Of a stretch of 64,000 bases of DNA, positions 220 through 53,100 are shown piece by piece. The notes beneath the pieces were generated by a model. The model did not search any database. It had not been told where the DNA came from and saw only the letters and a program-made list of their open reading frames with translations. Made by a program: the position numbers and the translations under genes. Where the stretch lies: positions 519,492-583,491 of the forward strand of contig CM074822.1 in NCBI GenBank assembly GCA_037447605.1, written 5' to 3'. Numbering within the stretch: position 1 is the stretch's first letter; each line of letters begins with the position of its first letter. Source of the DNA: Zygnema circumcarinatum SAG 698-1b. Its lineage: Eukaryota; Plantae; Zygnematophyceae.

Positions 220-660
220 GATACGTGGCGGAATATAATTTGGCCACGTGTCAGAATTGACTGTTGAAATATGGGACTACTTGGGCCACTCCACTGGGAA
301 CCTTTTTTTTTGAAGATCGTCTAATCACAACGTACCACGCGTACACTCTTGCGTACGTGGCAGGATACCATTGGAGGATTTTCCCGAGGGAGGCGGCCCC
401 TTTTTGGAGACGACAAGGGCGCGAGGGCGAGCAGATGACGGAGCCCAGAAGGACCGCATCCAATCAGATCCTGAAACGTGTAACTTGTGTACACGTGGCA
501 CTCTGCCATTGGGTTGGGAGGGAGCAGACGGCCCTTCCTGGAAGGAAACGAGAGGACTTGACCGAACTCAAGGAACAACGTCCAATCGGGACGCGCCACG
601 TGTATATTTCTGCCTACATGGCGATCTCCCATTGGCCAGCACTTTCCCATATTGTATAAA
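220..660 (+). promoter_or_regulatory. G-box/ABRE-rich proximal promoter with TATA box upstream of the lipocalin gene
   Basis: CACGTG at 245, 492 and 597; ACGTGGC at 223, 355 and 493; ATTGG (reverse CCAAT) at 631; TATAAA at 655-660, about 70 nt upstream of ATG 732. Confidence 0.55.
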
Positions 661-731: not shown

Positions 732-3700
732 ATGGCGGCAGCGATGATGGCCCGGAATAGGGTTAGGGTTTTGGTACCCCTTCTGGTGATTTTAGGGCTA
801 CTGCCGCTGCAGAGCGCGCAGGAGACGCAGCTTGGAAAGCAGAGGGGCTTCTGTCAGCGCTACTATGGAGGGAGCACTGCCTGCAGAACGCCTCCCACTG
901 TAGATACTGTGGATCTTTCAGCCTATCTGGTGAGATTAATCTCTTATTTCTATGTATGCTTCTTTTAATAGAGGTGACGCTCTCTGTTCTCGTATCTTAC
1001 TCGCTCCCGGCCATTTTCTCACTCTCCCTCCCTCGGTCTCTGTCGGTCTCTCTCTCCTCACTCTCCCTCGGTCTCTCTCGGTCTCTCTCGGTCTCTCTTT
1101 TGCTCTCTCTCCCTCGGTAACTCTCGGTCTCTCTCTCGCTCTCTCTCTCTCGGTCGCTCTCGGTCTCTCCCTCTCTCTCTCTCTCTCCGTTTCTCTCGCT
1201 TCTTTATTTCTCGCTCCGTCTGATTGCTCTGTGTGTGAAAAGAGCTGACTTTGGACCTTTCTTCTTTTGTAAAAACAGTCAAGCATCTTCCAATGGCGAC
1301 TCGCCACCTCAGCAATTTGGCGCACGTAGCGAATCACCATTGGAAGATGCTTGAATGTAGTCTGCATCGGAAGGCAGCTCATATTGTCTTTGTGATTATT
1401 GGAAAGGCGAGAAACTTATTTCAGACGAAGCGTGACTGAAAAAATGTGAAAAGAAGCTTATACTCTGTTCTTCCGAAAACCTTAAAATTACTTCATACCT
1501 CACCAGCTTGCTCTCCACCTTCAGTTTCAGTTTCAATTTCAATTTCCCTCAGCCCCTTTTTTTTTTTTGCTGCAATGTTGTACTTGCTTTAACTTTCCAC
1601 TTGGAGTGATTAGCACGCACTCGCTTAATCAAACTACCTGGTCCCTTCATTTCCTCTCTCTCTCTCGTTCTCTCTCAAACTCTCTTCTTCTTCCCCTCTC
1701 TCTCCTGTCCCGCTTCCCTCCCTCTCCCTCTCCCTCTCCCTCCCCCTCTGACCGGATACAGCTATTTTCATCTATTTTTTTCTTCTCACGCTCTTTTCAG
1801 TCGTTCATCCTCGTGTTCTCCTTTTTAGGGTTCTCCTCACTCCTTGTCTTGATGCGTGTACTTGGCGCAGGGTACTTGGTACGAGATCGGATCAACGGCT
1901 GACTTTAAGTTTGTTCAAGAGAATGGTTTGATCTGTATCACGGCGAATTATTCCATTATTGGCTATTCCACTGACGGTCTACCGAAAATCAGGTGCGCTT
2001 AACAACCCAGACATTCGATCCCTTCTTTGTGCAAGCAAAAAAAGAAAATGTGAACCTGAAATTGTGCTTTTGATAGGCATCAATAGATCCAAATGCTTAT
2101 ATTCTTCGTCCTAATGCACGACACAGTTGCAAGAAAGACATCACCTCTTATCGCCAGAACTCTTTTGAGTACTCATGACTCATATTTCTTAGGAGGGCAT
2201 TTTATATTTTTTTAATATCTTAAGCGAGTATGAATATATCATAAATTCCCCAACTACCTTGTCCTTGTTGAAATTCAGGGTCATCAACCGTGGGCTGATT
2301 GTAGCCCCTCCAGAATTGCAAGCCGTAGTATCCAACATCTCCACAAATGCAATCTTTGTCACGTCAAGTACTACTGCAATCTGTCGACTATTAAGCAGCA
2401 ATTCCGCCCTCGTTCAAGCCCTTCAGTCGCTGCTTAACTTATCTACAACGTTAGACTCGGAATCTCGCAGTAAGGTGAGCTCCCTCCTCTCCTCCCGCCC
2501 TTCTCCTTCCTCCCTCCTCTCTCCCTCCTCCCTCCTCCCTCCTCCCTCCTCCCTCCTCTCCTTCCGCCCTTCTCCTCCCCTCTCCCTCCTCCCTCCTCTC
2601 CTCTGCTCTTCTCCTTCGTCCCTCCTCTCTCCCTCCTCCCTCCCTCCCCTGCTCCTCCTCTCTCCATCTCCTGCGTCCTGCTCTCCTTCGCTCCTTCTCT
2701 GCTTCCTGCAGATCAGTTGTCGAGAGTATTGACACATATTCAGAACCGTATTTTTGGCAGATTCAAGGCTTCACTTTAGACATAGATAATGCATTGCTCG
2801 AACTTTCCCCGTTGAGCCGAGCTATTTATAAGGACATTCAGACTATTATGTCCGGTACGGATGAGTTGATGACGTTTCGAACACAGAATCAGAGTTTGGT
2901 GACGAGAAGAATCTCCACTCGAGTCGACAAAATTCTCTTGTCTGTAGAAGCGATAAAAAATATCACTCTACGAGTTACAGGGTTGGTAGGGCAGCTTCAA
3001 ACAGTTTCTTCTCTCGACGAGGTATTGACCAATTTAATTTTTTAGTCCTTTGCTTCTGTTAGAATTTGAGGAGGGTATGAAAAAAAATTCATACTGAGGG
3101 GAAGAGGAAAAATTCTACAACATGATGCTGCATGTTTCTCTTTGCCTCACTCCTTTCTGCTTTTCTTCTCAATTTTCCTCTTTCCACTCGTTGTTCCTCC
3201 GCTCTTTCTCTCTCCTCTCCTCTCTCTCTCTCTCTCCTCTCTCACTCCCTTCCAATTATCCCTCCCTCCTCTATCCCCTCTCTGTCGACCGTCTATTCAG
3301 CAGTTCTTTATCTATGCAATTGATCGATCTGAAATTCCAACCATTCATTCATCCATTCATTCTATTCATCCTCTCTCTGCAGGTGAAGAACTCTGCGGCT
3401 ACACTTGCAAAGGTTGCGGGATTTGGAGGTAACATAACCGGTTTAGCATACAGCATTGCTACATTTTCGGGTATCTTGAAAACTGCAGTCGAGGGTTTGA
3501 CTCTACCTGTGACTCCCATCACAGCCCCAACAACTGTAATTGGAACAGCATCCCCAAAATTGGGCGCAGTAAGATTACGATACAAGCTTTTGTTTGCTTC
3601 ATTCATTTTGAATTGTAGTTTCTGTTCATAGAAAGATTCTGTTCATAGAAAAAAGTATCGTTTCTTCGTTTTGTCCCCAACAACTGCAGATACTACATTG

Positions 3701-4213
3701 TTAGCCTCTATGTTTCCGTTCCGTTTTACGTCGGAATATGTGCGAAGCTACAGTTTTCATATTCTTCCTGTTCTTGATGTGTACAGAAGGGAAAACTCGC
3801 AGTGGCTTTTGGACCAGTTCCGGGGCCCTATTGGATTATTGGCCTTTATGGGAACGCAAGTTCAGGCTATGATGAGGCAGTGGTGTACTCGTGTGAGCCT
3901 TCTTTCTTTGCGGCCAACGAGGTACGCTTGTGAAGCACATGGAAACATCAGTTTTCGCTCCCCTCCCCCTCCCCCTCCNNNNNNNNNNTTTCCTTCCTCA
4001 TTCTGACCTCTTCTTGTTGTTGTTTTGGTGTAACAGATAACTATGTATTTGCTGTCCCGAAAACCAACCGTTCCAGCCTCATCGTTTGAGAGGTTCAATG
4101 CTCTTGTGAAGAAGTACCGCCTGTTCGTGGGAGGGAGCAACCCCTTCACTCTTACAGTGCAGGACGAGGCACGCTGTGCTCTGTATCTCAATAGTGTGCA
4201 GTATGGAGGCTGA
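732..4213 (+). CDS. Secreted ApoD-like lipocalin with a ~200-aa helical insertion (7 exons, 424 aa)
   Basis: Exons 732-929, 1871-1992, 2279-2474, 2761-3021, 3383-3568, 3787-3921 and 4037-4213. All introns are GT-AG and phase-compatible (1275 nt). N-terminal hydrophobic signal peptide (VRVLVPLLVILGLLPLQSA). Lipocalin SCR1 VDLSAYLGTWYEIG, then CITANYS, KIRVINRG, KLAVAFGPVPGPYWII, AVVYSC and SCR3 YLLSRKPTV. The exon 4 acceptor at 2760 was chosen on phase. Confidence 0.88.
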
Positions 4214-4419: not shown

Positions 4420-4453
<34 letters not shown>

Positions 4454-4926
4454 NNNNNNNNNNCCCCCCCCCCCCCCCCCCCCCCCACCAACCACGAAAT
4501 TTTTGGACCCTTCCCTGTCAACTAAAAATTAAGCTTCGACCAACAAGTCCCTCTATCTTTGAACAGTTGCCAGTCAAGAATTGCTCGAAGTTCTCTTTGT
4601 CAGAAGGCTGCATTCCATTGCATCGAAGGGTTCCTGGCAAAGCATTTTGTTTTTGTTTTTTCTTTTTAAATAGTTGGTGAAGGCTGTTACAGTGTCTGGC
4701 CAACGGCGAGGCTCGGCTTCAAGCTCTGACGGTAGAAAGTCTCACTGTCCTTCAGCGACATGTCCGCGATGGTGCAAAAGTTTCCAAACCAAGCTGCAAA
4801 GGGAACTCCCTCGGCCCATCCATGGCTGGGCTCTGCTCTATGATCAAAGCCACAGCTTGCTCCCTCCTTCAGCTGCTTAAAAATGGGCTTGCCACAGCAG
4901 CCATTTACTTTATTATATTTATTTAT

Positions 4927-5170
4927 GTCGGACCATTGGACCGGCAACCATTAGCCAACCATTGGGTAGCCAATCCTTGCTGTTCGCAACCATTGGCATA
5001 GGGTTGCCTACCATTGGCGTTCAATGGATACTGCGGCCCGGAGCCAATGCTTAGAAACCAATGATGAATCCAATGGTTGCAACCATTGACAATGGTTGCT
5101 TGGGTCGAAAATCAATGGACAGCCATTGGCGCAATGGTTGGAGGGATCGTTGGTTGACAACCATTGGGAA
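4927..5170. repeat. Dispersed CCATTGG/CCAATGG-rich repeat family, copy 1
   Basis: Begins GTCGGACCATTGG and holds many CCATTG/CAATGG motifs in both orientations. The same end motif recurs at 14068 and 23810, and in reverse at 37555-37565 and ~41125-41135. Confidence 0.7.
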
Positions 5171-7116: not shown

Positions 7117-8975
7117 TAATTCTTGTGGAATTATAATGCGTTGTTAGGGTTTCAAAACCTTTTTTTTTCAAAATAAAATCTTCCCTATGGAAAAAGGAGC
7201 GTGTATAGACAAAAAAGGTGCAAAAAAATCATTTTTCTAATGCGTTATTAGGGTTTCAAAACCTTTTTTTCTAAAATAAAATCTGCCCGACGGAAAAAGG
7301 AGCGTGTAGTGACAAAAAGGAGCGTGTAGTGACAAAAAAGGTGCGAGAAAATCATATTCGTTCATAATCTTTTTTTTTCTCAAATAGAACCTGCCCGGCG
7401 AAAAAAGGTCTGTGCGTAGACAAAAAAGGTGTGAGAATAGAATTTTCCTAAAACAAGGCTAGGAGCGGAAAACTACGCCTAGGCACAACAACGCAGGCCT
7501 AGAAGCCCTAACGGTTATCAACCGTTAGTTTTCAAAAATCCCAAAACATTCCAACGGTTGGTCCAACTGTTGGTCCAACGGTTGATCCGCTCTGTGCAGG
7601 TCCACGGTCTTTCAAAGTCAAGTGAACAGATTTTATTGGTTTCGGTCATTGCCGCAATAGGCCGTACGGCTAGAAGGCCCCTAACGACAAAGTCTACCGC
7701 CCAACCTCCAGCTGTGGCAGTAGGTCAGCTGACAAAAAACTGACGTGGTTGTGTAGGTAGGTTTTTTGTCGCCAAGTGCACCCCCTCTCCATGTACATGG
7801 ATGTAGTTTTATTCCACTTCCAGTTCATTCGCAGTTTCATTATCCGTAAACATTAGACGGCGCGTATGCATGAACTCTTTTCTTCACATGGAAACGCAGT
7901 CTACAAAATCGACGAGGTGGTCCCCAGTTCGAACGTCTTCAAAAGTCACCTTTTGGATGACTGTACAATACCGTGCAATGCGGTACAATGGAGAACAAGG
8001 CCGTACCCAAAGTGTACGATTTCTGAACAGACCGTATCACACGGACAGCCCGTGCTTTAATGGCGGAGATTCTTCTCCACCCCTAGATGACAAAATAGAG
8101 ATTTGCGACTCTTGCGGTGACCGTACACAAAGCCAATCCTTTTTGGAACTTCTGAATATGCGATGACGTGGCACGATTTTATTTGTCGTTTTAAGTCGTT
8201 CAACTAATCATAACTTGTCACGTCAGCGCACATTAAAAAAGGAAGAACGGTGCCGACATTTTCCCATGTGCTTTAATTCTCGCAAGTGTGAACCGACAAA
8301 CACGTGGCAGTTTATAAGTCGCTATTAAGCAACCCTTTTTCGTAAATGTTTGTCGTCTAGTGAGTTCAAATCGTTGCTCACAAATCCGATCTTCTAGAAC
8401 GGCCTCCTATTTGAAAGTGCCGATATATCGTTTTGCGATACTAAGACGAAAAATCGTATGTATCTCCACGTGGAGATCTGCGACTGGTCGAGAATTTGGA
8501 AACCACGCAGAAGGTAATGCGGAGGAAGCTTCCACGAAGCCAGATTTGTCGGTGGAAACTTTGGGATCGGATTTTTTTATTTTTGTATTTTGTATAATGT
8601 TTTCTTCTTGACCGAAGATAGATGTGCTCCTATCCGCCAATGAACGTGCCGATTGACACGCTTTTAGAGTGTAAAAATAGTATTAAAAATTTCTGCTTGT
8701 ATACCCGTTAATGTCGGGCAGACCGAAAATTCAGAAAAAAATTCCCTACTGTTTCTGGGCCCTACAGGGCCTCTCCTTTCCAAGCTTTTTAAGCCATGGC
8801 GGCTTCGTCTTCCCCTTCTGCTAAGCCCCATCCTCTCACCCTTGAACTCTAAACAGCATAAAAACAACCCGAAACAGCATAATTGGAGGAAACAGGGGCT
8901 AGGAAAGAAAACCCACATTTTAGTTTTCTAATTTAGGCATCAAATTGGTGTGATTTTTGTGGGGGTAGACGAGCC

Positions 8976-12064: not shown

Positions 12065-12437
12065 GTCGCCAGCCGGCAACGCGTTGGCCTGCCGGCAACG
12101 AGATAGGCGCACATACCAGGAAGGTGGGCCACCTGCTGCACCAGGTGGGGGGGCACCGGCTGGGGGGTGCACTTGGGCGGTTGGGCTGTGCTGCAAGCGG
12201 GCACATTTAGGGTTAGCTTGTATGGTTTCTCCTTTTTCACTAAAACAAAACAAAAAAAGAAGGGGTGCAGAGTTTTGGAGAAGGCAGAATTGGGGGAATC
12301 TCTACCTCTCTCTCTCTCTGTCTCTTCCTCGCTCTCCCTTTCTCTCTCTCTGTCTCTTCCCCTCTCTCTCTTTCTCTCCCTCTCTCTCTCTCTCTCCCTC
12401 CCTACCTCTCCCTCTCTCTCTCTCTCTCCCTCGGATC

Positions 12438-13061
12438 ATGTGGTGGTGGCCATGGGGCGAGAGCGAGCAGGCAGAGGGCAAGAAGAAGATTGAGGAGGCG
12501 AAGCCCGCCGTTGTGAAGCTCAACCGGCAGAGCTTCAAGAGGGCTCTGTCAGTGGCGAAGGCAGCGAGCAGTAACCATGGCGAAGCTCCGGAGGTAGTGG
12601 ATGAAAGGTTTGTGTTGGACCTTTACCACGTCTTCAAGAGGTTTGATCGTGATGGAGATGGAAAGATTTCTGCAGAGGAGCTTATGGATGTGCTTGTTGA
12701 CCTCGGAGCATCGCCGTCTATGAGCGAAGTGAAGACAATGATCAGCGAATTCGACGAAGATCAGGATGGAAATCTGGATATGGAGGAGTTTGTGAAGCTG
12801 AATGTCTTGGCAGCCATAGTGCCTGATGATGTGACGGGTGAAGATGAAATCCATCAACTCTTTAAGGTGTTTGATCACAATCAGAACGGCTTGATTTGCG
12901 CTGACGAGCTCTTCAGAGTGATTAGGAGTACAGGGGAGCCTGTGACGCTGGAAGAGTGCTTAGATATGATCCGAATGGCTGACACAAACGGCGATGGCCA
13001 CATCGATGTTGAAGAGTTTCGTCGACTCATGGGCAAGCCCTTTCATGCCGCCAGCTCCTAA
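12438..13061 (+). CDS. CML: Calmodulin-like protein (CML-b), intronless, 207 aa, with N-terminal extension
   Basis: ATG 12438 (MWWWPWG...) follows a CT-rich leader. Loops DRDGDGKISAEE, DEDQDGNLDMEE, DHNQNGLICADE and DTNGDGHIDVEE. Confidence 0.92.
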   Translation: MWWWPWGESEQAEGKKKIEEAKPAVVKLNRQSFKRALSVAKAASSNHGEAPEVVDERFVLDLYHVFKRFDRDGDGKISAEELMDVLVDLGASPSMSEVKTMISEFDEDQDGNLDMEEFVKLNVLAAIVPDDVTGEDEIHQLFKVFDHNQNGLICADELFRVIRSTGEPVTLEECLDMIRMADTNGDGHIDVEEFRRLMGKPFHAASS

Positions 13062-14500: not shown

Positions 14501-14787
14501 CACATGGGCCCATGGCCACGAGCCTGCCAATAATTTTCCAGCCGGCCGCAAAAGCCGGAGGAATCATCGCAAGCCGACAAAAAAAATCGCTGAGATTTTC
14601 CGTTGCGTGTCGCCACGTGGCGCGAGGACAGGGGGCGGCCGGCATAAATTCCATTCTGATGTCATCGTGACGCGGAACCCGACAGATTCAGCAAAACTTT
14701 CTTGCGTCAGCTCCTCAAACCCAGTTTTGAGGGCCTTGTTCTGTTTGTCGTTATCGGACCTTGTTTCACTGCGCTCGTCGCAATTTA

Positions 14788-14986
14788 GGGGGAGTTAGAC
14801 CTGGACCATCGCTTACGAAATTTCCGAATTCTTTATACTAAAAGTCAAAATTTCGTATACGAATTCCGGGTCGGGATCCCTGGCTATGCCGTACACAGTC
14901 GTACCGAAATGCGTAACTAGCCAATGCTGAATTCGCCCGACAAGCTTACGAAATTGATTTGGCGATGGTCAAGGTTTGACTCCCCC
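14788..14986. mobile_element. TA-flanked MITE (same family as 6960-7116)
   Basis: Inverted termini GGGGGAGTTAGACCTGGACCATCGC / GCGATGGTCAAGGTTTGACTCCCCC with TA on both sides. Confidence 0.75.
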
Positions 14987-16342
14987 TAAATTGCCTCGGT
15001 TCTGGCAAACCCAGATTTAGGGTTTGAAACCGACCCGAACCGGTTTCGAACTGCGCGAGACCCGGTTCGGCACGGAAAAGGGCAAACATGTACGGAGGGT
15101 CAAAACGTGAAAAAACCCTAAAACCCTAAAAAACCCAAACCCTGAAAATCCTACGAACCCAAAACAACTACAAAACGAGAAATTTGACTAAAATTTAAGG
15201 TCAGAACAAGTACTTTGTACAGCCACATTGTGAAACTAAAAAGTACTGTTTTTGAATTTATCGCATGGACGGGGAAAAAATTCCATTACGGTATCAATTT
15301 TTTCTTAACTATTTGTTCCCACGACTTTTCAACATTTACATTTAAATTTCATGTTCAAATTGAAAGCTGTCGAATCCGACAAGTACACCATACAAATTTC
15401 GTACGAAATTTGTACGGGTTTTTCTAGTAACCAAATCACCAAAGGTTTTATGCCACGTCATAAAAGTCTTCCCACGTGGCACCATTCCATTAGCCAATTT
15501 TTTTCACTAGCTGCCAAATCCAAAAAGGAGAAACCCCCATAGAATGAGCTTCATCCCAATTGCCAAATCTGTCGGCGCAAGACGACAAATGACATAAATG
15601 AACAGTAGATTCATGCCCATTTTTTGTGTCGTTACCCGCTGTACGTAACGGAACTAGTCTCGCACGTGGAATCATCACAAACGACAAAAATCGGTCCGTT
15701 TCCCTCTGCCCCGTGGCCGTTCTCAACCGCCGCACCGCCGCATTTTCCGGAGCTCTGATTTTACCACCCTATCCCATTTCTTAAATCGATTTTTTAGCAA
15801 AAACCGCAAACCGCGGGACTCCAAAAGCTCGCCCCAACTTTCCGGTTTTCGCTATGAGATTGGTTTGTCCAGCAAACTTTGCACTTGATGCCGCCATGGA
15901 GGGAGGCGTGGGAGTGGGAGAGGGGGGGGTGAGGAGCGGGAGAGGGTGAGGGAGAGGGGGAGGGTGAGGGAGAGAGGTGGGAGGCGAGGAGGCAGCCTTC
16001 ACTCTCCCAGGCTGAAGCTCAGGCTTGGAAGCTTTTTTAAGGGTTCTCAAAGAGGAGGAGCGTGCTCTGTCCTCCTCTCTCTTCTCTCTCTCTCTCTCTC
16101 TCCCTCTCTCTCTCTGGATCTTGCGAGCATTCCTCCTCTATCTCTCTCTGTTGGTTCTCTTCCTCCCTCCATTAAGTCTTTCTCTCCCTCAATTCCGCCC
16201 CTCTCTCTCTCCCTCCCTCCTCTCCTCTCTCTTCCTCCTCGCCTCCTCTTCTCTCTCCCTCCATTCCTCCTCTCTCTCCCTCCAATCCCCCTTTCTCTCT
16301 CCCCTCCCGCTCTCTCCCTCTCTCTCTCTCTCGAGCCTCCCG

Positions 16343-22984: not shown

Positions 22985-23016
22985 TCGCCACGTATGCTAA
23001 TTTGCATACGTGGCGA
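22985..23016. promoter_or_regulatory. Perfect inverted pair of ABRE-like sites upstream of CML-c
   Basis: TCGCCACGTATGC-TAATTT-GCATACGTGGCGA: 13-bp perfect arms, each carrying ACGTGGC. Confidence 0.5.
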
Positions 23017-29219: not shown

Positions 29220-32200
29220 TGTTATGATTCTTCCGAGCTCCTTAGGTGAAGGCAAATTTGTTCTGAGAAAGGAGGCAGAATGGAGGAGGCGAAGAGAGGA
29301 GGGAGAAGAGAAGAAGAGAAGAGAAGAAGGAGAGAAGAAGGAGAGGAAGACGAGGAGAAGAGGAGGGGGGAAGGGGAGAAGAGAGGGAGGGGTGGGAGAG
29401 GGAAGGGAGGGAGGAGCGAGGAGAGGGAATGGAGAGGGATGGGCGAAGGAAAGGGAGCAAGAGAGAGGGGACGCAGAAAAGGACAATACCAAATCCCGAA
29501 TCTGCAAGAAACTCTAGCAATCCCAAAAGACCCATTAACCCTAGAAAGGAAGTAACCTGTCAAAATATACTTTCCTCGTTTTGAAAAGTGACTTGGGAAC
29601 TTACAAAAAAAACTGAATCATCCTATTGTCCTATTGTCCTATTGTCCTATTGACCTATACTCCAAATTTTCCTCTTGTTCTAAAGCGTGTTCTGGGTAAG
29701 GGATGTTCACAATAGGAAGGAAACTGCTCGCTTGAGCACAAAGCCCTGCTCTGAAGATAGCTTTGGAAGCTCTGAAGGAGGGAGCTATCCCATAGAAGCA
29801 GTGAACCGGCTTATGGCTGTTATCAAGTTTTTGGTGCGGAGGAGAGCAGCGGGAGAGGCGGCGTTTTCTGCAGGACTGTTCTATGAGGCAGTCCGCCAGT
29901 TTTCACGAGGTATGCGTTTTTCCTTCTCTCTCTCTCTCTGTCTCTCTCTCCCTCTCTCTCTCTTTCTCTCCCCCCCTCTCTCTCTCTCTCTGTCTCTCTC
30001 GCTCTCTCCCTCCCTCTCTCTCTCTCCCTCTCTCTCTCTCTGATCATTTGATGCACAAATTTGTACGTGAGCATGCACAGCATTCAAACTGCGAGACAAT
30101 TGCAAGACCCTAAAGGCTTGCTGAAGTTCAGAATCCGCGGTTTGATCTTCAAAATCCGTGGCTAAATGTGCATGCTTTGTCTACCTGTGGGTATGAATCT
30201 CATTCGTACTTTAGACCTTTCTTCTGAACTTGCTATTCAGACACAAACTCAGGGTTTTACAACTCTGAATCATTGTTTCTTCAATCATTTCTTTGCTGAT
30301 GCAGTTTTAGACTCAAGAAAGGGTACACCTCAAGCCCTTGCAGCTGCTCTCTACCTCAGACGAGCTGCTGCTTATGAAAAGCTTTCTCGCATTCCTGAAG
30401 CTATTGCTGATTACAACAGAGCAGCAGCCCTTGATCCCTTCAATATGGAAGCCCTTTGGAACAGAGCTGCTCTTTACAGTGCTGTGGGATGCCATAGTGA
30501 GAGTGCTTTGGACCTTCAGAAACTTCTCGAAATTGAGTCAACTCTTACTAACAGGACCTCTCAGCTAAATCGAGGTGGAGAGAATCGGTTACAGGCACCA
30601 CTGAGCAGTTTACAGGGGTGGTGGAAGGTGTTCGCACAACCCTGGTTTGACTCCTTTGTGAGAGGGGTTGCTGTGTTGGATTCTGGGCCATTCCTCTATC
30701 AAATACTTAAGATGGGAGAGTGGGCAGCAATCCATAGATTAGGGAAAATCAGGACAAGGGGTGGGAGGGGAGTATCCTCATCCTTAGGACAGAAAATTCA
30801 AATGCATAACCGTATAGGTGAAATAAAGACTCGTCTTTTACAGCTTGAGCAAATGCAGGAACAGAAGGGGGTAGAGGTCGACCATGGCAAAATTCTTGGG
30901 CTTCCCTCTCCGGGACGATCTCAGCCGTCCATTTCAGCGATTGAAACGGCTTATCGGGTAGCATTGCTTAAGCACGATCCTGAAAAGGCTGGTCAGTTTT
31001 TGGAACGTTGTGCTATTAGCGATCAAGAGAGAGTGGATGCAGCCAAAGTGACAGTTACTGTTGAGGGTGAGCGACTCCAACGGTTGGTAGAATCTGCACA
31101 TTCAGGAGCTATAAGGGCACTGTGGGGGCTGCGGGAGATGGAGGGAGAGAGAGACGAGAGAGAGGGGGAAGGGAGAGAGGGGGAAGGGAGAGAGGATGCA
31201 GTGCAGTCAATTGCAAGCTCTGTGGAGTCTGATGAGAGAGGGAAAGGGTTGAGGGAAGGAGGAGGGGACATGGAAACGAAGGAGTTGGGAGGAGAATGTA
31301 TGGTGAGGAGAGTTTCGGTTGATGATATTTGCCTTGAAGAGAAGAGTTTGAGGGTAGAGGAGGAGGCAAGTAGTAAAGACAGTGAGCTTATTACCAGTGG
31401 AGTGGAGAAAGCTTCTCTCAGTTTTGTGAAGGTTAAAAGACCAAGTAGGGTGAAAAAGGAGCTGTTTGCAAAGGTGGGGGTGGGGGGGAAAGATCAGGAA
31501 GGAAAGGATAAGCAGCGAAGGTGGAGACCGAAGGAGAAGGAGGGAGGGAGAGGGGATCAGGTGGAGAAGAAGGGGATTCGTGTACGGCTGAGTGGGAGGA
31601 GGAGGTTAGAGCAAGAGCAAGGGCCATTACAGGCAGGAGAATATGACAGTTTACTGAGAGGTCTCAGCCCTAGTAGACAGTTAGCAGGAGAGCTTGTGGA
31701 AGAGGCAGACTTTAGGGCTTTAGCCTCTTTAGATAATTTGCAATTAGAGCCCATGAGGGAGAGAGGGAGAGAAAAGGGGTTTTTGGGAAGAGGTTTGCGA
31801 GGGGTATTGTCGGTTGGAGGGGAGCCGAAGAGTGGAGACAAGGAAAGAAAGGAGTGGGTGAGGAAAAAGGAAGCATCGTCTACTAAGGAGAGATCGAAAG
31901 TGGAAGAGGTTGTAAAAGTTGCCGTTGTGAAGGAGCCGAAAAGGAAGGGAAGGAGACGAAGTGGGGGGGCTGTGGAGACTTTGAAAAGAATAATATTGGA
32001 AGCTCAGATGGAAGATAGAAAGGAGGAGAACAGTGAGGGAGTGAAGGCAGAGTCTCCTGTAGCTACCAATGAGGTAGTAGAGAGTGGGATTCAGAACAGT
32101 GAGGTAGTCAAACAGGGAGTAGTGGTTGGAAAGGAAGGCTGTGCTGAAGAAGAGGAGGAGAAGCAAAAGTCTTGGAAGTTGATTAAGAAGAAAGTGGGGG

Positions 32201-32749
32201 CTATAACCTCTTTAGGAAGAGTTCGAAAAGCAGTTTCAGGCCCTACTGAATCGAGTGGGTTGGAAGCATGGAGGCAGGAGGGAGAGGAGAGTGGTAGTCA
32301 ACAGGGAGGGTTTGTAGTAGCATTGGGATGTTTAGGAAGTGGGGGAAGTCCAAGCATTAGTCCTTCAGGGTTAAGAAAAGAGTCTCATTTTGGAAAGTTT
32401 GAGCGATCTCCTTCCGATTCGGGTGCAATGAAAACAAGGGTTGGGAAACTGGGTTTAACTCAGCCTTGGTTTTCTTCTCCCTCTATAAATGAAGGGGATG
32501 CAGCTGCTATTCCGGCCGGAATTAGGGTTCCTACCTCTGTAAGAATGCCGCTTGCAACATGGCCATTAAGTAGAGACGAGGAGAATGCTGCTGTCAGCCG
32601 TCGGATTGAGGTGAGCTCAATCTGCCTCTCTCTCTCATCTCCCCTCTCAGTGGAGCCTACAGATGGAGAGGGAGAGGGAGAGGGAGAGGGAGAGGGAGAG
32701 GGAGAGAGGGAGNNNNNNNNNNGAGAGGGGGAGAGGGGGAGAGGGGTCT

Positions 32750-35600
<2,851 letters not shown>

Positions 35601-36473
35601 AGGAAGAGGGAGGGAGTGGCAGTGGGAGAGGGAGAGGGAGGGAGAAGGAGAGGGAGAGGGGGTGAGAGAGGAAGAGGGGGGGGAGGGGGAGAGGGAGGGA
35701 GGGTGGAAGTGGGAGAGGAAGAGGGAGGGAGTGGGAGTGGGAGAGGGAGAGGGAGGGAGAGGGGGAGGGAGAGGGCGAGGGAGAGCGATAGGGAGTGGGA
35801 GAGGAAGAGGGGGGAGGGGAGAGGAAGAGGGGGAGGGGGAGAGGGAGGGGGTGGAAGTGAGAGAGGAAGAGGGAGGGGGAGGGGGAGAGGGAGGGGGGTG
35901 GAAGGAGAGAGGAAGAGGGGGGAGGGGGGAGAGGGAGGGGGAGGGGGAGAGGAAGAGGGGGGAGGGGGAGAGGGAGGGAGGGTGGAAGTGGGAGAGGAAG
36001 AGGGGGGAGGGGGAGAGGAGAGGGGAGGGGGAGGGGGGGGAGGGAGGGGGAAGGAGAGGGCAAGGCAGGTACTGGTGGTAGGGTTCAAACTGAGTCAATC
36101 GCCGTCGAATGCATCTTATCGCAATCAGAGAACAAGAGTGACAAATTTTCTCTTCCCAAAACAGAAAAAAACTAGACCCAAGAAGAACGCGTGAGAGGGA
36201 CGGGAAGCGGCCGGCGTGCAATGTATCGAGCCAAGTGGCGGGTCAGGATCCGTCATAAGATGCCACGTGGCCCGTGTCTCGCAGTAATCTACCCGCCGCG
36301 TGGCGACGACGTGACAAGCAACGATTGCTGTGAAATCTGGGCTGTGGTGGAACCCGACGTTTTTTCCGAATAAAAGGCGATATCCAACGTGGCACTTTAT
36401 TGACCGTTCGATGGATCTCCATCCTGACGCGGTCCTCCCTCTGCAGGAGGACAGCTCTGGGACCACGTGGTGA

Positions 36474-36640
36474 CTCCCCATTGGGCCACGTGGCCAATTT
36501 GGCCGCGTGGTGTCGTCCCATTAGGCCACCTGCTAGCCCTGAAGCCGCGTGGTGGCTCCCTTTGGGGCCACGTGACAGGCCTGCAGCCGCGTGATGTCTC
36601 CCCATTGGGCCACGTAGCTCTAGGAAGGTGTCCACGTCAA
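36474..36640 (+). repeat. Four degenerate 40-42-bp repeats, each with a G-box-like core and mostly a CCGCGTG box
   Basis: CCAC cores at 36486, 36526, 36568 and 36610. CCGCGTG at 36503, 36545 and 36587. ATTGG-N-CCACG at 36480 and 36604. Confidence 0.7.
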
Positions 36641-37451
36641 CTGTCACATGGCAACATGTCATTTGCTCTTCAGGGATTCGCTTAAAACCGAAACCCTTTC
36701 GATTGTGAGGCAAGAATTTTGTCTCTTTTTACATTTTGTCGTATTAGCACGCCTGATGCAGGAACAGATTTTTCAGATTTTTTTGGGCCGTACTAATACG
36801 ACAAACGTCACTATACGGAGATTCAGACTTTGGGAACTGCGCCTTTCTTGTCGTGTCACGGAACACGGGCTGAACTTTAATGCCACTCGTGTCAACGTTG
36901 GCAGGTCCAGACAAATTTGGTTTGTCGGATGCGGGAGGCTCGTACTTTTTAAGCCTCTTTCACATAATAGTCCGAGCAAAAGCAATGACGTCCTGCCACG
37001 TGTACGCGGGGTGGGGGAGCGGGGGCGTGTGGGGCCAAAAAAGGACTTCGGAATTTGGGATTTGATCTCTCGCGATGGCGATGGCATGAAATGGACAACA
37101 TGGCCAACAACAACACCAACAACATGGGGAAGGAACCACGAGGAATTGGTCACAACATTGACCTATTGACGAAAGTATGAAGCCATGAGTAAAACTTGCT
37201 TTTGGGCCCAACAACAACAACATGGAGAGAGGAACCACGAGGAAACGAGGGCACACACATTGTTGTCCTGTGGATGAAAGAATGAAGTCATGAGTGAAAT
37301 ACTTCCTTCTTGGCCCAACAACAACAAAGGCAAAAACGCGGCTCTAGAAGCAGGAAACCCGAAACTGGAAACTTCCGGAGAGCAGAAAAGAAACTAAAAA
37401 TGAAAAAAAATTCTGCACAAGGCGGACCAATGAATCAACTATTGAAATTTT

Positions 37452-37565
37452 ACCAACCATTGGCTCGCGACCCCAGCCAGCCATTGCCAATGGTTGTCAA
37501 CCATTGGTTGTCCAACCATTGCCATCCAATGGTTAATCCAATGGTTGGAGATCCCATGGTCCGAC
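37452..37565. repeat. CCATTGG family, right-end fragment
   Basis: CCATTG/CAATGG array ending CCCATGGTCCGAC. Confidence 0.6.
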
Positions 37566-38969
37566 TTAAAAACAGAAACCCTCCAAAACCGACAAAGGCA
37601 CAAGCGCGACTCGCAAAAGCACGAGGGACGCGCCAGACAAAACGACAAAATAACAGCGTGAGCCTGCCACGTGTCTACATTAGAGGCGGCGGCGGCGGCA
37701 CCGGGCGGCAGCAACTGTCGGAAGCATTATAAACGACAAAATTGGCATTGATTTAATGAACCCAGACAAAGACTCAAGGACAGAATCCCTCCCTCAAAAA
37801 GACAAATGTACTCCAAAAAATGTTCTATCCCGGGGAGGGCTCACCTCTAGTCGTGTCGTCTAGCGATTTGCGACAGTCAAAAGTTTGTCGTTATTATTCT
37901 CTGGATCCGACTATTTTGTTATCTTCTGTGAGATCCGCTCGAAAAATCAATTCCGAACCACCCAAGGCCCAGCTGCCACGTGTCCCGCCGACCGCGTGCC
38001 CGCCCGGAGGGGCCGGTCGTAACGGGGCGTCGAACCAAAATATCGACCAAATGTCGGTAGGATCCACTCCCAGGATCAACTCCATATTAACCAATCACCG
38101 ATGTGCGTCCCACATGCGGTTTCTCTTACAGCCAATAAAATACTTTCACGTGTTCCAGAATTTTGGCACCCCGCTGGAAGGGCTGACGTGGCGCGGACAC
38201 TTTTGGTCACTCGGGTCGCGCCGCGCCGCCCGCCGACAAGCGGAATTTGGCTCAGCGCGGGCTCCGACTGGCTGCGACGGTTTCGGTGGGCGACAGTTTG
38301 GGGGCGTGCGACGTTTGTGATTAGCTGGCGACTTTGTCGGTGCGGACGGGTCGGCTCGGCGGGGCTTACCGGTCCGATAGTAAATTGTGGGGGCAGGCGC
38401 CGGGCGGGTACGAGAGGGAGGGAGGGAGGGAGAGCGAGAGAGAGGAGCAAAGGAGGGAGGAAACAAGGGAGACAGAGAGAGAGAGATAGAGAGAGAGAGA
38501 GGAAGAGGGAGGGAGGGAGAGAGAGAGGAGCAAGGGAGGGAGAGAAAGGAGGAAACAAGGGAGACAGAGAGAGAGTGGGAGGAAGAAGGGAGGGAGGGAG
38601 AGAGAGGCAAGGGAGAGGGAAGGGAGAAAGGGAGGGAGAGGGGAGAAGAGGCCAGCGAGTGGAATATCGATCTGGATACAGATAACTGAGGGAGGGAGGT
38701 AGAGGATTCGAGAAGGACAGCGAAGGGGTAGGGAGGTGGAGCTAGCAGATCAGAGAGAGAGATTAGAAAGAGAGAAATATCCGAGAGAGAGATATAAGGT
38801 CAGGAAGAGGGAGAGAGAGAGAGTGGGGGAATAAGAGAGAGAGGGGGAGAGAGCGAGTGGGGTAAGCAGAGAGAGAGGGGGGGAGCGAGAGGGGGGAAGC
38901 AAAGAGAGAGAGGGGAAGAGAGAAAGAGGGGGAAGCAGAGAGGGAGGAGGAACCGGAAGCAGGCTCTCC

Positions 38970-40343
38970 ATGGTGTACGAGTCGTGGCCCGGTGGATTGG
39001 AGGCTCTCAGGATGCAGGAGCGTGACGTGGCGCTCTGGGATTGGTGGAGGCAGCAGGAGGCGGCCGCCCATTGGCTGTGGGCGCAGCAGCATGCTCCGTA
39101 CGGCCACAGTGAGAGGGCAGCCATGGCTGCCACGTGGAAGCAGCAGATCCAGCCGTACCTGACAGCTGGCCAGGCAGACCTCGCCCGGGCGACCTCCGAG
39201 CTCAACCAATCCCTCGACGCGAGGAAAAAAAACGTCTCCAAAAAACGGGCTCCTTTTGGGGCTACAGCCGATGCTACAGCGAGAGCGAGGGCGAGGGGAA
39301 ATGCTAGAGTCACTGCTACAGCCGCAGCTACAGCCGCCTCGTCTGAAAAGTCCCCCCTCTCCTCCCTCACTGTAGCGCTCTTTCCTCCGTACGGAACGAA
39401 GCAGAGCTCGAGTCCCCCCCTCCCGGAGGAGCAGGACGTGGACACGTGGACCTATCAGGAGCAGCCATGTGGCAGTCACACAAGCGACTCGCACTCTACG
39501 ACGGCCAACGGAGCAGGGATCATAGAACCTCATGTGCATGCAGCATGGCTGGCATCCATGGGTGGGCCTGTGGGGGGTGGGCAGCGGTTCAGCCATGGCG
39601 GCGGACCTTTGGGGGTTCAATCTGAAGGAGAAGGTCTGCTTGCTTGCAAGCATCGGCGATTCGGCCCTAATGGAAGAGATAAGGAGGGTCGGAGGGAGGG
39701 CAAGGAGCAAGACATGGGGGGGGTTGCAGCCGTTAGGGTTTTGAATGGGAATGGTGGTGGGAACAGCAAGGGTTTACAAGATGGTGGGGTGATTGAGAAG
39801 CAGAGACATAAGCGGCGGAAAGTTGTGAAGGCGGGGGGTCGGCAGGCGTCCTCTGAAGTTCATGTGGTCCCAGTTCTACGGAATTCCGTTGAAATCGCAA
39901 CAGGGAACCTCAGTTATCAGATCCCATCAAGCTCCCTGCTTCCCCCCTCTCCCAGCATCACTCTTGACACGTGTCCTCCTGGAAGCAGCCCTCTTCTTTG
40001 CAGGACACGTGGCAACCTGCCACAGGCTACATCCCCTTCATTAAGGAAGTGTGAGGATCAGAAGGAGGGGCAAAGTTTCCCTGTTCCAATGTATGAACCG
40101 GTGGCTGAAAGATTTAACCTTTCTAATCCGCCACGTGTCGCATCTGCTGTGCTCCGAGCGGTGGAGAAGATGACTAGGGGCACAAGGAGGGAGGGTAGAG
40201 GCACCCCTCTCTATGAATGTCTGACCTGTAAGACAGGGCAGACTTCTCTGCGAATGGGGTCTGAAGGTTCATTTGAGGTAGATGGGGGGGGGTGTGGGAG
40301 AGAGGAGAGGAAGGCTGAGTTAGATCTTGAACTTCACCTTTAG
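38970..40343 (+). CDS. Intronless uncharacterised protein (457 aa) with NLS-like motifs and a C-terminal EAR motif; putative transcriptional repressor
   Basis: A 1374-nt ORF of mixed complexity with the ATG in CCATGG context. Basic clusters RKKNVSKKR and KRRKVVK, a YECLTC remnant and the terminus AELDLELHL*. Confidence 0.7.
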   Translation: MVYESWPGGLEALRMQERDVALWDWWRQQEAAAHWLWAQQHAPYGHSERAAMAATWKQQIQPYLTAGQADLARATSELNQSLDARKKNVSKKRAPFGATADATARARARGNARVTATAAATAASSEKSPLSSLTVALFPPYGTKQSSSPPLPEEQDVDTWTYQEQPCGSHTSDSHSTTANGAGIIEPHVHAAWLASMGGPVGGGQRFSHGGGPLGVQSEGEGLLACKHRRFGPNGRDKEGRREGKEQDMGGVAAVRVLNGNGGGNSKGLQDGGVIEKQRHKRRKVVKAGGRQASSEVHVVPVLRNSVEIATGNLSYQIPSSSLLPPSPSITLDTCPPGSSPLLCRTRGNLPQATSPSLRKCEDQKEGQSFPVPMYEPVAERFNLSNPPRVASAVLRAVEKMTRGTRREGRGTPLYECLTCKTGQTSLRMGSEGSFEVDGGGCGREERKAELDLELHL

Positions 40344-46120: not shown

Positions 46121-46819
46121 AAACTTTTTCGGGGCGAAAGAAAATTTCCGGCTCCATTTGCCCGACCGACCGACCAAAATTATAGATCAGTTAAAATTCT
46201 CCAACTGGTTAACAGCGACTCATATCCTACCGGTCAAAATTTGTTGTGAAAGAAGTTGCGATTACCTGTCCTCAATAGACAAGGATCAATGCTTGGGAAT
46301 AGTTAAATAGGGCTTCGAAAGTGATAGAGAGAGAGCGAGGGGGAGGGAGGGAGAGAGAGAGTGGGAGAGGGGAGGGGGGAGGGGGAGGGAGAGAGTTAGA
46401 TAGGGAGAGAGAGTGGGGGAAGAAAGATTGAGAGAGAGAGAGGGGGAGGGGGGAGAGAGAGAGTTAGATAGGGAGAGGGAGTGGGGGGAGAGAGATTCAG
46501 AGAGAGAGAGTGGGAGGGGGACAGAGAGAGAGAGAGGAGAGAGAGAGAGGATTTCGGCGATTTAGATGACTGTGAGCACTTGCGCTGCTTCTCTCTCTCT
46601 CGCCTCTCCCGCATCTCCCCTCGCTTGGATTCGCTTCACAATCACTCCCGACCATTGCGAATTGTGGGACGGAGCATCCTGCAACATTTATCAGCAAAAA
46701 AAATTTTAGAAAAACTGTTTCTTCTTGCAGTGCTTCGAACATAGAGAAGCAATCAACCCCTTGTTCCAGCACTTGCTTTCCATCCTCCATCCTACGCCCC
46801 ACCCCAACTGTACCATCTA

Positions 46820-48840
46820 CCTCTCTCACCCACTCTCTCTCTCCCTCTCCCTCCCTCCCTCTCTCCCTCCTCTCCCTCCCCCCCTCTCCCCTCCCTCCCC
46901 CTCCCTCCCACTCCCCTCCCCTCCCCTCCCCTCCCTCCCCCTCTCTCACTCCCTCCCTCTCCCTCCCTCTCTCTCCCTCCTGTCCCTCCCTCTCGCCTCC
47001 CTCTCCCTCCCTCTCCCTCCCCCCCCTCCCCCCCTCCCCCTCCCCCTCCCTCTCCTGCTCCCTCCCTCACCTCCCTCCCTCTCTCTCCCTCCTCCCTCCC
47101 CTCCCTCCCCCTCCTCCCCCTCCCTCCCCCTCCCTCCCCCTCCTCCCCCTCCCTCCCCCTCCCTCCCCTCCCTCTCCCTCCCTCCCCCTCCTCCCCCTCC
47201 CTCCCCCCTCCTCCCCCTCCCTCCCCCTCCTCCTCCCTCCCCCTCCCTCCCCCTCCTCCCCCTCCCTCCCCCTCCCTCCCCCTCCCTCCCCCTCCCCCTC
47301 TCTCCCTCTCCTCCTCCTCTCTCCTCCCTCTCCCTCCCCCCCCCTCTCCCTCCCTCCCCCTCCCTCCACTCCCCTCCCCTCCCCTCCCCTCCCCCCCCCT
47401 CTCTCTCACTCCCTCCCACTCTCCCTCCCTCTCTCTCCCTCCCTGTCCCTCCCTCTCACCCTCCCTCTCCCTCCCTCTCCCTCCCCCCCCCTCCCCCTCC
47501 CCCTCCCTCTCACTCCCTCCCTCACACTCTCCCTCCTCTCTCTCCCTCCCCCTCCTCCCTCCCTCCCCCTCCCTCCCTTCCCTCCCCTCCCCTCCCCTCC
47601 CTCCCCCTCCTCCCTCCCTCCCCCCTCTCCTCCCCTCCCCTCCCCTCCCCTCCCCTCCCCTCCCCTCCCCTCCTCCCTCCCCTCCCCTCCCTCCCCTCCC
47701 TCCCCCTCCCCTCCCCCTCCCTCCCCTCCTCCCTCCCTCCCCCTCTCTGTCCCTCTCTCCTCCCTCTCTCCCTCCTCTCCCTCCCTCTCCCTCCCCCTCC
47801 CCCCCTCCCTCCACTCACTCCCCCTCCCCTCCCTCCCCTCCCTCTCTCTCCCTCCTCCCTCTCCCTCCCTCTCTCTCCCTCCCTGTCCCTCCCTCTCCGC
47901 CCTCCCTCTCCCTCCCTCTCCCTCCCCCTCCCCCTCCCCCTCCCTCTCAGCTCCCTCCCCTCACTCACTTCTCCCTCCCCCTCTCTCTCCCTCCCCCTCC
48001 CTCCCCCTCCTCCCCCTCCCTCCCCTCCCCTCCCCTCCCTCTCCCTCCCTCTCTCCCTCCCTCTCTCCCTCCTCTCCCTCCCCCTCCCTCTCCCTCTCCC
48101 TCCCTCTCCCTCCCTCTCCCTCCCTCTCCCTCCTCCCTCCCCTCCCCTCCCCTCCCCTCCCCTCCCCTCCCCTCCCCTCCCCTCCCTCCTCTCCTCTCCC
48201 TCCCCTCCTCCCCCTCCCTCCCCTCCCTCCCCCTCCCTCCCCCTCCCTCCCCCTCCCTCCCCTCCCTCCCTTCCCTCCCCCTCCCTCCCCCTCCCTCCCC
48301 CTCCCTCCCCCTCCCTCCCCCTCCCCCTCTCTCTCCCTCTCCCTCCCCTCCCTCTCTCCCTCCCTCTCTCCCTCCCCCTCCCTCCCCTCCCCCCCTCCCT
48401 CACTCCACTCCCCTCCCCTCCCCTCCCCTCCCCCCCCCTCTCTCTCACTCCCTCCCACTCTCCCTCCCTCTCTCTCCCTCCCTGTCCCTCCCTCTCACCC
48501 TCCCTCTCCCTCCCTCTCCTCCCCCTCCCTCCCCCTCCCTCTCACTCCCTCCCTCCCACCTCTCCCCTCCTCTCTCTCCTCCCCCTCCCTCCCCCTCCTC
48601 CCCCTCCCCTCCCCCTCCCTCCCCTCCCTCTCCTCCCCTCCTCCCTCCCCTCCCTCTCCCTCTCCCTCCCTCTCCCTCCCTCTCCCTCCCTCTCCCTCCT
48701 CCCTCCCCTCCCCTCCCCTCCCCTCCCCTCCCCTCCCCTCCCCTCCCCTCCCTCCTCTCCTCTCCCTCCCCTCCTCCCCCTCCCTCCCCTCCCTCCCCCT
48801 CCTCCCCCTCCCTCCCTCCCCCTCTCTCTCCCTCTCTGCC
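46820..48840 (+). repeat. ~2-kb near-pure polypyrimidine (C/T) tract
   Basis: Almost exclusively CCCT/CTCC/CTCT permutations with very few purines. Confidence 0.9.
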
Positions 48841-48999
48841 CTGGCCTCTCTCCTGCACCACTCTCTCCAGCGTCCTGACCACTGCCGCAAAGTCCGGCCT
48901 CTCCCCCGGCCCCGCCCTCCAGCACGCCTCCATCAGGGAACCCAGCACGCGGGGGCAGCCCCGGGGGATGCACGGACGCAAACCCTGCAATGGGAGGAC

Positions 49000-51636: not shown

Positions 51637-52079
51637 GGCGGGCCTCACTGTGGGGCTGCTGCTCGCAGAGGGGCCAGTCACAGAACTTAGTCTCTCAAGG
51701 GAGAGGGAAAGGGAGGGAGAGGGAGAAAGCGAGAGAGAACGAGAGAGAGAGAGAGGGCGATGGCGGGAGCGGGAGAGGGAGAGGTAGAAAGCAAGGAAGA
51801 GATGGAGGAAGAGGAAGCAAGCGCGCGAGAGAGAGAGAAAGGGCGAAGGACGAAGGGAGTATGAGAGGGCCAGGTGGAAATTAAGTGAGAGAGGGAGAGG
51901 GAGGGAGGGTGGCAGGTGGCGGCGGAGTCTCAACCGCCGCCCTTTGGCGGCAGCGGCGCCGGGCGGCAGCGGACACGCGGCACGTGCCAAGTGGCCGAGG
52001 CGGCCACCCGCCCGGCATGCCCGCGGGGGACCCGGGCGGGGACGTACGGAAGCTTGGGGGCCACGACAAGAAGGACGCG

Positions 52080-53100
52080 TCGGTAGTGGATTACGTGGCA
52101 CAATACCAGAATGACACGTCAGCTTTCACATGCGGGATTCCTGGAAAAGATGCGAGCTGGACCAATAGGGAGACGACACGTGAAGGAATCTTTTGCGAAT
52201 TTGAGAGTATGTGTGGATGCCACGTGGGATATGGAAGATCCGCGTCACACGGCAGATTTCGGGGCTTTTGTACTTTTTTCGCACGTTCGAACGGACGGGT
52301 CGTCGTGGTTTCCAGGAGGGGAAGGCGTGCCGGTTACGGACGGGGCAGGGCTGTGAAAATAACGGGGCGATCGGCCAACGGAAATCGAGTTTTGTGCCAC
52401 GTGGCTGGTTGTGATTGGATGTGGTGGATGGTTTGGTGAGAACCTGTCGCTGTCGGTGGGGCTCCCGTTGGACTTTTTGTGCCGGAAGGTCGAAAAGGCG
52501 GCCAGGTGTAGTGAACCTGACGATGGTGAAATTCAAAAGTTAATAAAAGCAGAAAATTGCCGATAAAAATAGCACATAATGGATCGTATGTTGGCGCCGT
52601 CGATTCAATGCATCCGACGGTTTAGATTCATTTAAAAATGAAAAAGTTTATTTGAGCGATTCTGCTCCAATTGAATAATTTCAACGGCCGGAAGTGCCGT
52701 CCTGAGCACGTTTGTCACTTAGTGACTGTACGAATGCTTTATCGTTTCGGAACGATCCAAGTTCGAGCATTCAAAAAATCGTGGTCGCTTTGTCGCTTCG
52801 CAATGACCAATTTGTCGGATCGGCCTTGTCGCCACGCCAGCACCTGGTCACGTGCTGCCCAGTCAGCTCCGGCGCCCCTTCCGCGTGGAAGGGGCACACG
52901 TGGCAGCCCGCCAATGTCGTGCACTTTCCACGTCATCCGGCGTACCCTTCTGCGATTCGATGAGGCGCATGTTAACGTTGTGCGCACGTGGCGCGCCTGA
53001 GGCGGTTGGATCCGTTTCCCGGAAAGGCGGCAAGCGACCTTCCTTGACCAACTCGGAAGAATCGGCCAATGGCAGCATGCCACGTGTACATGTGCCTCCC
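52080..53100 (-). promoter_or_regulatory. G-box/ABRE-rich upstream region of the kinase
   Basis: Numerous ACGTG cores (e.g. GATTACGTGGC, GACACGTGAA, GCCACGTGGG, GCCACGTGGC, GTCACGTGC, GCACACGTGGC, GCACGTGGCG, GCCACGTGT) lie 450-1450 nt upstream of ATG 51636. Confidence 0.45.

Follow-up and report, generated by a model that had tools for sequence, protein, structure and literature searches.

The DNA analyzed here is a 64,000-nucleotide stretch of Zygnema circumcarinatum SAG 698-1b (contig CM074822.1, positions 519,492 to 583,491), hereafter called the window, and near its start, at 732-4213 on the plus strand, lies a gene predicted to encode a secreted lipocalin whose barrel is split by a large and mostly helical insert. 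The gene was rebuilt from the raw sequence, and the seven joined exons gave a 1275-nt coding sequence with an open frame of 424 amino acids (aa) and no internal stops, while every one of the introns (6/6) was bounded by GT and AG. The seven-exon, 424-aa model proposed in an initial annotation of this DNA was thus reproduced, with a single correction, namely that exon 5 ends at 3568 and is followed by the donor GT at 3569. The ATG stands in a Kozak-like context (GCCATGG), and the sequence as a whole indicates that the lipocalin gene is probably real and intact. The exons and the signals that surround them are as follows.

223-635, plus strand: four tandem modules of ~130 bp, each with ACGTGGC (a core resembling a G-box or an abscisic acid (ABA)-responsive element, ABRE) and CCATTGG (an inverted CCAAT), the repeat spacing being 122-139 bp
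655-660, plus strand: TATAAA, 72 nt 5' of the ATG, assigned by pattern position
732-929, plus strand: exon 1, aa 1-66, in which a signal-peptide-like N-terminus (aa 1-29) is followed by a linker with two Cys (C41, C51) and by the residues that lead into strand A
1871-1992, plus strand: exon 2, aa 67-107, ending in phase 2, with the GTWYEI motif of structurally conserved region 1 (SCR1) and strands A-B
2279-2474, plus strand: exon 3, aa 107-172, running from strand C (RVINRG) through a possible D-like strand (aa 123-138) into the first helix of the insert
2761-3021, plus strand: exon 4, aa 173-259, phase 0-0, the core of the insert
3383-3568, plus strand: exon 5, aa 260-321, phase 0-0, with a helix (aa 262-298) that includes a Gly-rich stretch, a Pro/Thr linker and a G-x-A segment (aa 308-316)
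3787-3921, plus strand: exon 6, aa 322-366, strands E-G, its first residue being the start of the C-terminal lipocalin profile match
3979-3988, no strand: run of N marking an assembly gap, located in intron 6 (3922-4036) and flanked by CT-rich low-complexity sequence
4037-4213, plus strand: exon 7, aa 367-424 and the TGA, with strand H bearing LSRKP (SCR3) and a C-terminal region with C413
4233-4238, plus strand: AATAAA, 20 nt 3' of the stop codon

Two sets of lipocalin sequences were compared with the protein: a 120-sequence profile of enterobacterial Blc only, and a broader profile of 75 diverse bacterial sequences drawn from 80 bacterial loci. The Blc profile gave two matches in the protein with their order preserved, and the broader profile gave two abutting domains, in which profile positions 13-95 correspond to aa 50-140 and positions 94-149 to aa 322-387 (full-sequence E = 2.2e-13). 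In pairwise alignment with E. coli Blc, aa 53-112 matched residues 23-78 with 44% identity (E = 7e-8), the part of this match that is encoded in exon 1 (aa 53-66) corresponding to Blc 23-39, and aa 329-378 aligned to Blc 109-147. Furthermore, when aa 113-307 were deleted in silico, the remainder gave a single colinear match to Blc 23-147 with 34% identity over 144 columns (E = 3e-11). Of the conserved regions of the family, SCR1 (G-x-W at the start of strand A) is present as GTWYEI (aa 67-72), aligned with GTWYEI of Blc, and SCR3 (with its Arg at the end of strand H) is present as YLLSRKP, aligned with WILSRTP of Blc. For SCR2, the F-G turn of the TDY type, GYDEAVV is a candidate at most: it lies opposite the D-x-x-Y-x-x-A-L-V region of Blc with a four-residue insertion within the alignment. 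The hydrophobic periodicity of the barrel halves has its maximum at 170-180 degrees. The broader profile alignment crosses the junction of exons 6 and 7 (aa 366|367), both of which are phase 0, and no profile segment is missing there; because the alignment is continuous across this junction, no hidden exon is needed at the gap in intron 6, and the reading frame is, as judged from the sequence, unaffected by the gap. These data indicate that the 424-aa protein is a split lipocalin at the level of sequence, as had been proposed from two lipocalin halves seen on either side of an insertion.

The protein begins with a signal-peptide-like N-terminus, recognized heuristically, in which three Arg in the n-region are followed by a 14-residue hydrophobic core, and the only 19-residue Kyte-Doolittle windows above 1.4 in the whole protein fall here, at aa 3-31. 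The six Cys and seven N-glycosylation sequons of the full protein are consistent with a secreted protein. Judged from these features, the product is probably a secreted, signal-peptide-bearing protein of two modules.

The second module, the insert, comprises ~185-195 residues within about aa 117-321. Its reading frame contains no stops in 193 codons, whereas the two alternative frames have 19 and 6, and its hydrophobic periodicity peaks at 100 degrees with a power of 28.9, compared with 3.5 at beta angles. AlphaFold2 modeled exon 4 alone as one long helix (aa 189-258) with a mean predicted local distance difference test (pLDDT) score of 87, and exon 5 alone as a helix at aa 262-298 (residues 3-39 of the modeled piece), the Gly-rich hydrophobic stretch included, with a mean pLDDT of 77. 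A Chou-Fasman prediction on the insert was discarded; it disagreed with AlphaFold2 on the helices. The ~25 residues that directly follow strand C (aa 117-142) are of unclear helical character, and a strand is possible there; hence the helical insertion of ~200 aa in the initial annotation is borne out by the alpha periodicity and by the confident helices of exons 4 and 5, but not for this first segment. The insert is rich in Leu, Ser and Thr, only 15% of its residues are charged, and it contains C142. All of its 18-residue windows lie in Eisenberg's globular field, with a maximum moment of 0.56 and a mean hydrophobicity of at most 0.57, and the highest 19-residue Kyte-Doolittle mean outside the signal peptide, 1.32, falls short of transmembrane hydrophobicity. 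The Gly-rich hydrophobic stretch and the five sequons noted earlier were both recovered, the former at aa 268-291 with the sequon N276 in its middle, and the latter as a mild enrichment over shuffled sequences (mean 2.1, P = 0.034). Codon usage shows no correlation between the insert and the lipocalin parts, in a sample too small to weigh. No internal repeat was found within the insert, and no paralogue of the gene was found within the 64-kb window. Altogether, the periodicity, the structure models and the composition suggest that the insert is probably a soluble, mostly helical, N-glycosylated domain.

Where the insert interrupts the barrel depends on which segment is taken as strand D, and the sequence leaves the location ambiguous between the C-D hairpin at the barrel mouth and the D-E hairpin at the closed end. 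In the bacterial sequences, the strand-D motif G-x-A-x-F is kept in 74, 72 and 73 of 75 sequences for G, A and F, respectively. Two segments compete for this role.

aa 308-316 (IGTASP), plus strand, exon 5: candidate strand D with the motif G and A kept and canonical spacing before strand E; the insert would then lie in the C-D turn
aa 123-138 (NAIFV), plus strand, exon 3: candidate strand D with the motif A and F kept; the insert would then lie in the D-E turn

The segment at aa 308-316 lies inside a region of beta-type periodicity that runs from aa 309 onward, whereas aa 123-138 is not clearly beta. However, when aa 308-316 was scored against the bacterial profile, 112 of 200 shuffles equaled or beat its score, meaning that it is no better than shuffled sequence, while the N-terminal profile alignment extends through aa 123-138 and did so in only 26 of 1000 shuffled inserts. 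A deletion scan gave 52.4 bits with aa 123-138 as strand D, a score reached by 7 of 80 shuffles, compared with a best of 44.4 bits with aa 308-316. With strand D at aa 123-138, the non-lipocalin part stops exactly at the junction of exons 5 and 6, and this placement fits an origin inside an ancestral intron because the edge of the insert coincides with that junction and because both exon 4 and exon 5 have phase 0-0. The C-D turn had been named as the site in the initial annotation; aa 308-316 speaks for it in keeping the G and the A, but with aa 123-138 as a competitor the site is not secure. That the insert replaces a short turn did hold, as the turn at the equivalent place in Blc is of a few residues. 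The ligand pocket of lipocalins is shaped by four variable open-end loops that join the strands pairwise (PMC8693463), so that an insert in the C-D turn would be located at the edge of the ligand mouth, while an insert in the D-E turn would hang off the closed end of the barrel. Only the latter placement would give the "cup on a stalk" that had been envisaged, and with the former the insert would be found at the mouth instead.

Among known lipocalins, the closest description is that of the seedless-plant-specific lipocalins (SLL), a third plant lipocalin group, which is secreted, confined to charophytes and bryophytes, "mostly" made of a Blc-like domain and of unknown function, with Pp3c11_15530 and Pp3c1_13830 as its Physcomitrium patens members (bioRxiv 10.1101/2025.03.13.638958). 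The protein described here shares with SLL the plant lineage, the Blc-like domain and the secretory signal peptide (called heuristically in this case), but, in a comparison made by description only, it has ~185-195 extra residues inside the domain where SLL is mostly the bare Blc-like domain; the word "insertion" is absent from the main text of that preprint (bioRxiv 10.1101/2025.03.13.638958). On sequence features, the gene most likely belongs to these secreted lipocalins of non-seed streptophytes. Blc and the bacterial Lipocalin_2 family (PF08212) resemble it in the 34% identity over the barrel without the insert and in the order of the motifs GTWYEI, VINxG, FGP and LSRxP; Blc differs in being a 177-aa lipoprotein with turns of a few residues, whereas the protein here has ~190 residues in one turn, a eukaryotic-type signal peptide and six introns. 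With ApoD and Lazarillo it shares the character of a secreted, glycosylated lipocalin, predicted in this case. The two disulfides of ApoD are Cys8-Cys114 and Cys41-Cys165, and C51, C88, C357 and C413 stand at what we take to be the positions of these two disulfides in the human protein; the IGTASP segment presumably resembles the ApoD strand-D motif. The published account of ApoD gives the Cys8-Cys114 bond and places Cys41 in the second disulfide, its partner being printed as Cys16 (PMC2784685). The hairpins of ApoD are all short, and the protein here has two extra Cys (C41, and C142 in the insert). The temperature-induced lipocalin (TIL) and the chloroplastic lipocalin (CHL/LCNP) of plants belong to the same superfamily and to the plant lineage; however, TIL is a protein of 189 aa in P. 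patens without a signal peptide, CHL/LCNP carries a chloroplast transit peptide, and descriptions of the two mention no helical domain within the barrel. The insert also differs from the class A amphipathic helices of exchangeable apolipoproteins, in that it lacks highly charged polar faces and all of its windows fall below the surface-seeking line, and from alpha-helical pore-forming toxins of the ClyA/Hbl type, in that it has neither a membrane-grade hydrophobic hairpin nor a family sequence match in Pfam, NCBIfam or the PDB.

Relatives of the insert were sought with its core, exon 4. A phmmer search against 1.84 billion representative proteins, a library without this lineage, returned 0 matches; a word-indexed protein search and a search of PDB sequences gave no match with exon 4, and scans of JGI metagenomes gave none with exon 4 or with exon 7. 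No family in Pfam or NCBIfam exceeded the threshold for exon 4 or the insert, and feature searches of the ESM Atlas with exons 3, 4 and 5 gave compositional look-alikes only. The only Pfam or NCBIfam match among all exons was a sub-threshold one of exon 3 to DUF7864 (E = 0.021), a family for which no paper was found in the literature. No lipocalin bearing an inserted helical segment or domain turned up in full-text literature searches, and lipocalins are absent from the main text of a 2026 survey of domain-insertion architectures. The architecture had initially been described as unrecognized, and this stands for the insertion, for which these searches found no precedent, but not for the protein around it, since secreted SLL lipocalins are known (bioRxiv 10.1101/2025.03.13.638958); the insertion is new, and the charophyte and bryophyte group in which it appears to occur has already been described.

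Taken together, the data are best explained by a secreted lipocalin of the Blc/ApoD/plant type in which one hairpin has grown into a lineage-specific, mostly helical and probably N-glycosylated domain of ~185-195 residues, a reading to which we assign a probability of about 0.5 on the sequence evidence. The two barrel halves would still close into one eight-stranded, ligand-binding barrel, and the helices of the insert would pack as an ordinary soluble bundle and not lie on lipid. Outside the cell, the protein may carry a hydrophobic ligand while the additional domain mediates docking or self-association, and an insert in the C-D turn at the mouth could form a lid or an extension of the pocket. 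The insert may have been born as new coding sequence inside an ancestral intron, as suggested by the phase 0-0 exons 4 and 5 and by the coincidence of the downstream non-lipocalin edge with the exon 5/6 junction. A stronger form of this reading, in which the protein is the first natural lipocalin with a whole folded domain inside its barrel and an intron-born helical bundle gates the pocket or docks to a partner in the wall or membrane, is put forward tentatively and is itself rather doubtful.

Several observations weigh against the reading of a lipocalin with a grown hairpin. Pfam and NCBIfam scans of each single exon gave no lipocalin match, single exons being too short for these searches and for those of PDB sequences. 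The protein library evidently lacks this lineage, because the neighboring EF-hand gene (12084-13061), whose own protein is also absent, has a best match of only 40% identity; close relatives with the same insert could therefore be present outside the searched library. The function of the protein as a carrier with a docking module is something that we purely infer. There are also seven in-frame, stop-free pairs of cryptic donors and acceptors, counted on paper, that lead from 2279-2327 to 3489-3549 and would produce lipocalins of canonical length (220-251 aa). Finally, public runs of the same organism contained 0.44-0.87 of the sampled words of 732-2474, compared with an exon-only expectation of 0.25, and 0.43-0.75 of those of 2279-3569, compared with an exon-only expectation of 0.44, figures that report the presence of sequence and not splicing. 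Taking the share of 0.43 for 2279-3569 to mean exons only was dropped, since the shares for 732-2474 exceed the exon-only value.

The cryptic sites and the run shares are what favor an alternative in which the main messenger RNA splices out most of the middle, so that the product is a bare lipocalin of 220-251 aa and the full-length form is produced as a minor isoform at most. The cryptic donors (e.g., GTGGGC and GTAGCC), however, are weaker than the six donors of the model, and about one third of random GT/AG pairs would be in frame in any case. Sequence that is always removed would be unlikely to remain free of stops over 193 codons, given the 19 and 6 stops of the alternative frames, and the strong helical periodicity would be unexpected in it. 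Nor could a plain lipocalin be obtained by ordinary exon skipping, because strand C sits in exon 3 and the joint skipping of exons 3-5 breaks the frame, exon 2 ending in phase 2 and exon 6 starting in phase 0. We consider this alternative unlikely. An assembly artefact, with foreign sequence fused into a lipocalin gene, might be suspected from the gap in intron 6 and the low-complexity introns; yet the gap lies downstream of the insert, the non-lipocalin sequence ends inside barrel-coding exons (certainly in exon 3, and in exon 5 if strand D is aa 308-316), and several independent runs of the same organism contain both stretches, so that such a fusion is highly improbable.

The gene could also be a young, decaying or non-functional derivative in which an exonized intron broke the barrel and the product neither folds nor works as a lipocalin. 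The lack of relatives of exon 4 in the searches, the nil codon-usage correlation (subject to the small sample) and the ambiguity of strand D are in keeping with this, but the frame is intact through seven exons with canonical splice sites, the lipocalin motifs and Cys are kept, the insert resembles designed helices in giving pLDDT values of 77-87 from a single sequence with AlphaFold2, and its sequons are mildly enriched; decay is accordingly judged quite unlikely. Slightly less probable again is an insert that acts on lipid surfaces or membranes, either as an exchangeable apolipoprotein-like module or as an alpha-helical pore-former with a Gly-rich inserting hairpin; an apolipoprotein-like carrier and a membrane-inserting module had been entertained initially. 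Its long amphipathic helices and the hydrophobic, Gly/Ala-rich segment at aa 268-291 invite this idea, and lipocalins such as ApoD are generally known to associate with lipoprotein particles and membranes (PMC2784685). The apolipoprotein option gains no support from the 15% charge and the globular placement of every 18-residue window, none of which enters Eisenberg's surface-seeking or membrane field, nor does the membrane-inserting option from the maximum Kyte-Doolittle mean of 1.32 and the consequent lack of any segment with transmembrane hydrophobicity; a sequon (N276) in the middle of the hydrophobic stretch and the lack of a sequence match to such families also speak against both.

The usual picture of a lipocalin is that of a compact carrier with a single domain and with loops that differ by a few residues only. 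If the reading of a grown hairpin is true, the ~190 tolerated residues would reveal the extent to which this scaffold can be enlarged, a matter of interest for engineered lipocalins (Anticalins), and the gene would plainly illustrate how a domain can be gained when new exons arise within an intron. An SLL member with a docking or gating module would give a starting point for identifying extracellular ligands and binding partners in early-diverging plants. Should the stronger form of the reading hold, early-diverging streptophytes would have turned the lipocalin scaffold into an extracellular shuttle for lipids or pigments.

With respect to the flanks of the gene, the upstream ACGTGGC elements were considered as a stress (ABA) promoter, and this was dropped because the heptamer is not specific to the gene: it occurs 54 times in the window compared with 2.4 expected. 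CCATTGG is likewise over-represented across the window and not specific to this gene. Within intron 1, at 1290-1343, a CCATTGG pair and an ACGT core resemble the upstream promoter modules; this group of motifs may act as an enhancer within the gene or as an alternative promoter, and it may be a reason why the share of 732-2474 found in the runs exceeds that of the exons. Just past the 3' end of the gene, a long poly-C tract (4421-4486) contains a second assembly gap (4454-4463). About 700 bp 3' of the gene, at 4933-5167, there is a dense cluster of the CCATTGG/CCAAT type, with seven exact copies and many variants in ~250 bp, and it may represent a satellite, a mobile element or an array of CCAAT boxes.

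Elsewhere in the window, the EF-hand gene at 12084-13061 (plus strand) is a single-exon open reading frame of 325 aa, in which the C-terminal half holds four EF-hands and the N-terminal half (~170 aa) is unmatched; its best match, named above by its identity, is a lycophyte calmodulin-like protein (CML), and the collection from which its own protein is absent holds 5.8 billion proteins. Two further long open frames lie on the plus strand, one of 861 aa at 30166-32751 with a single TPR match only and one of 717 aa at 46725-48878 with no Pfam match. The 54 copies of ACGTGGC, a number that 0 of 100 shuffles reached, are mostly clustered, with sites at 204-601 and clusters at 8166-8308, 14612-15480, 22987-23014, 32907-34506, 36262-40136 and 51150-53346, and CCATTGG, present 42 times compared with 10.7 expected, often stands beside them. 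Such a distribution suggests a promoter or repeat element spread through the genome and not a feature of one gene. A five-site ACGTGGC pattern is repeated at 32907-33037 and 34376-34506 with an offset of 1469 bp, which suggests a tandem duplication of ~1.5 kb.

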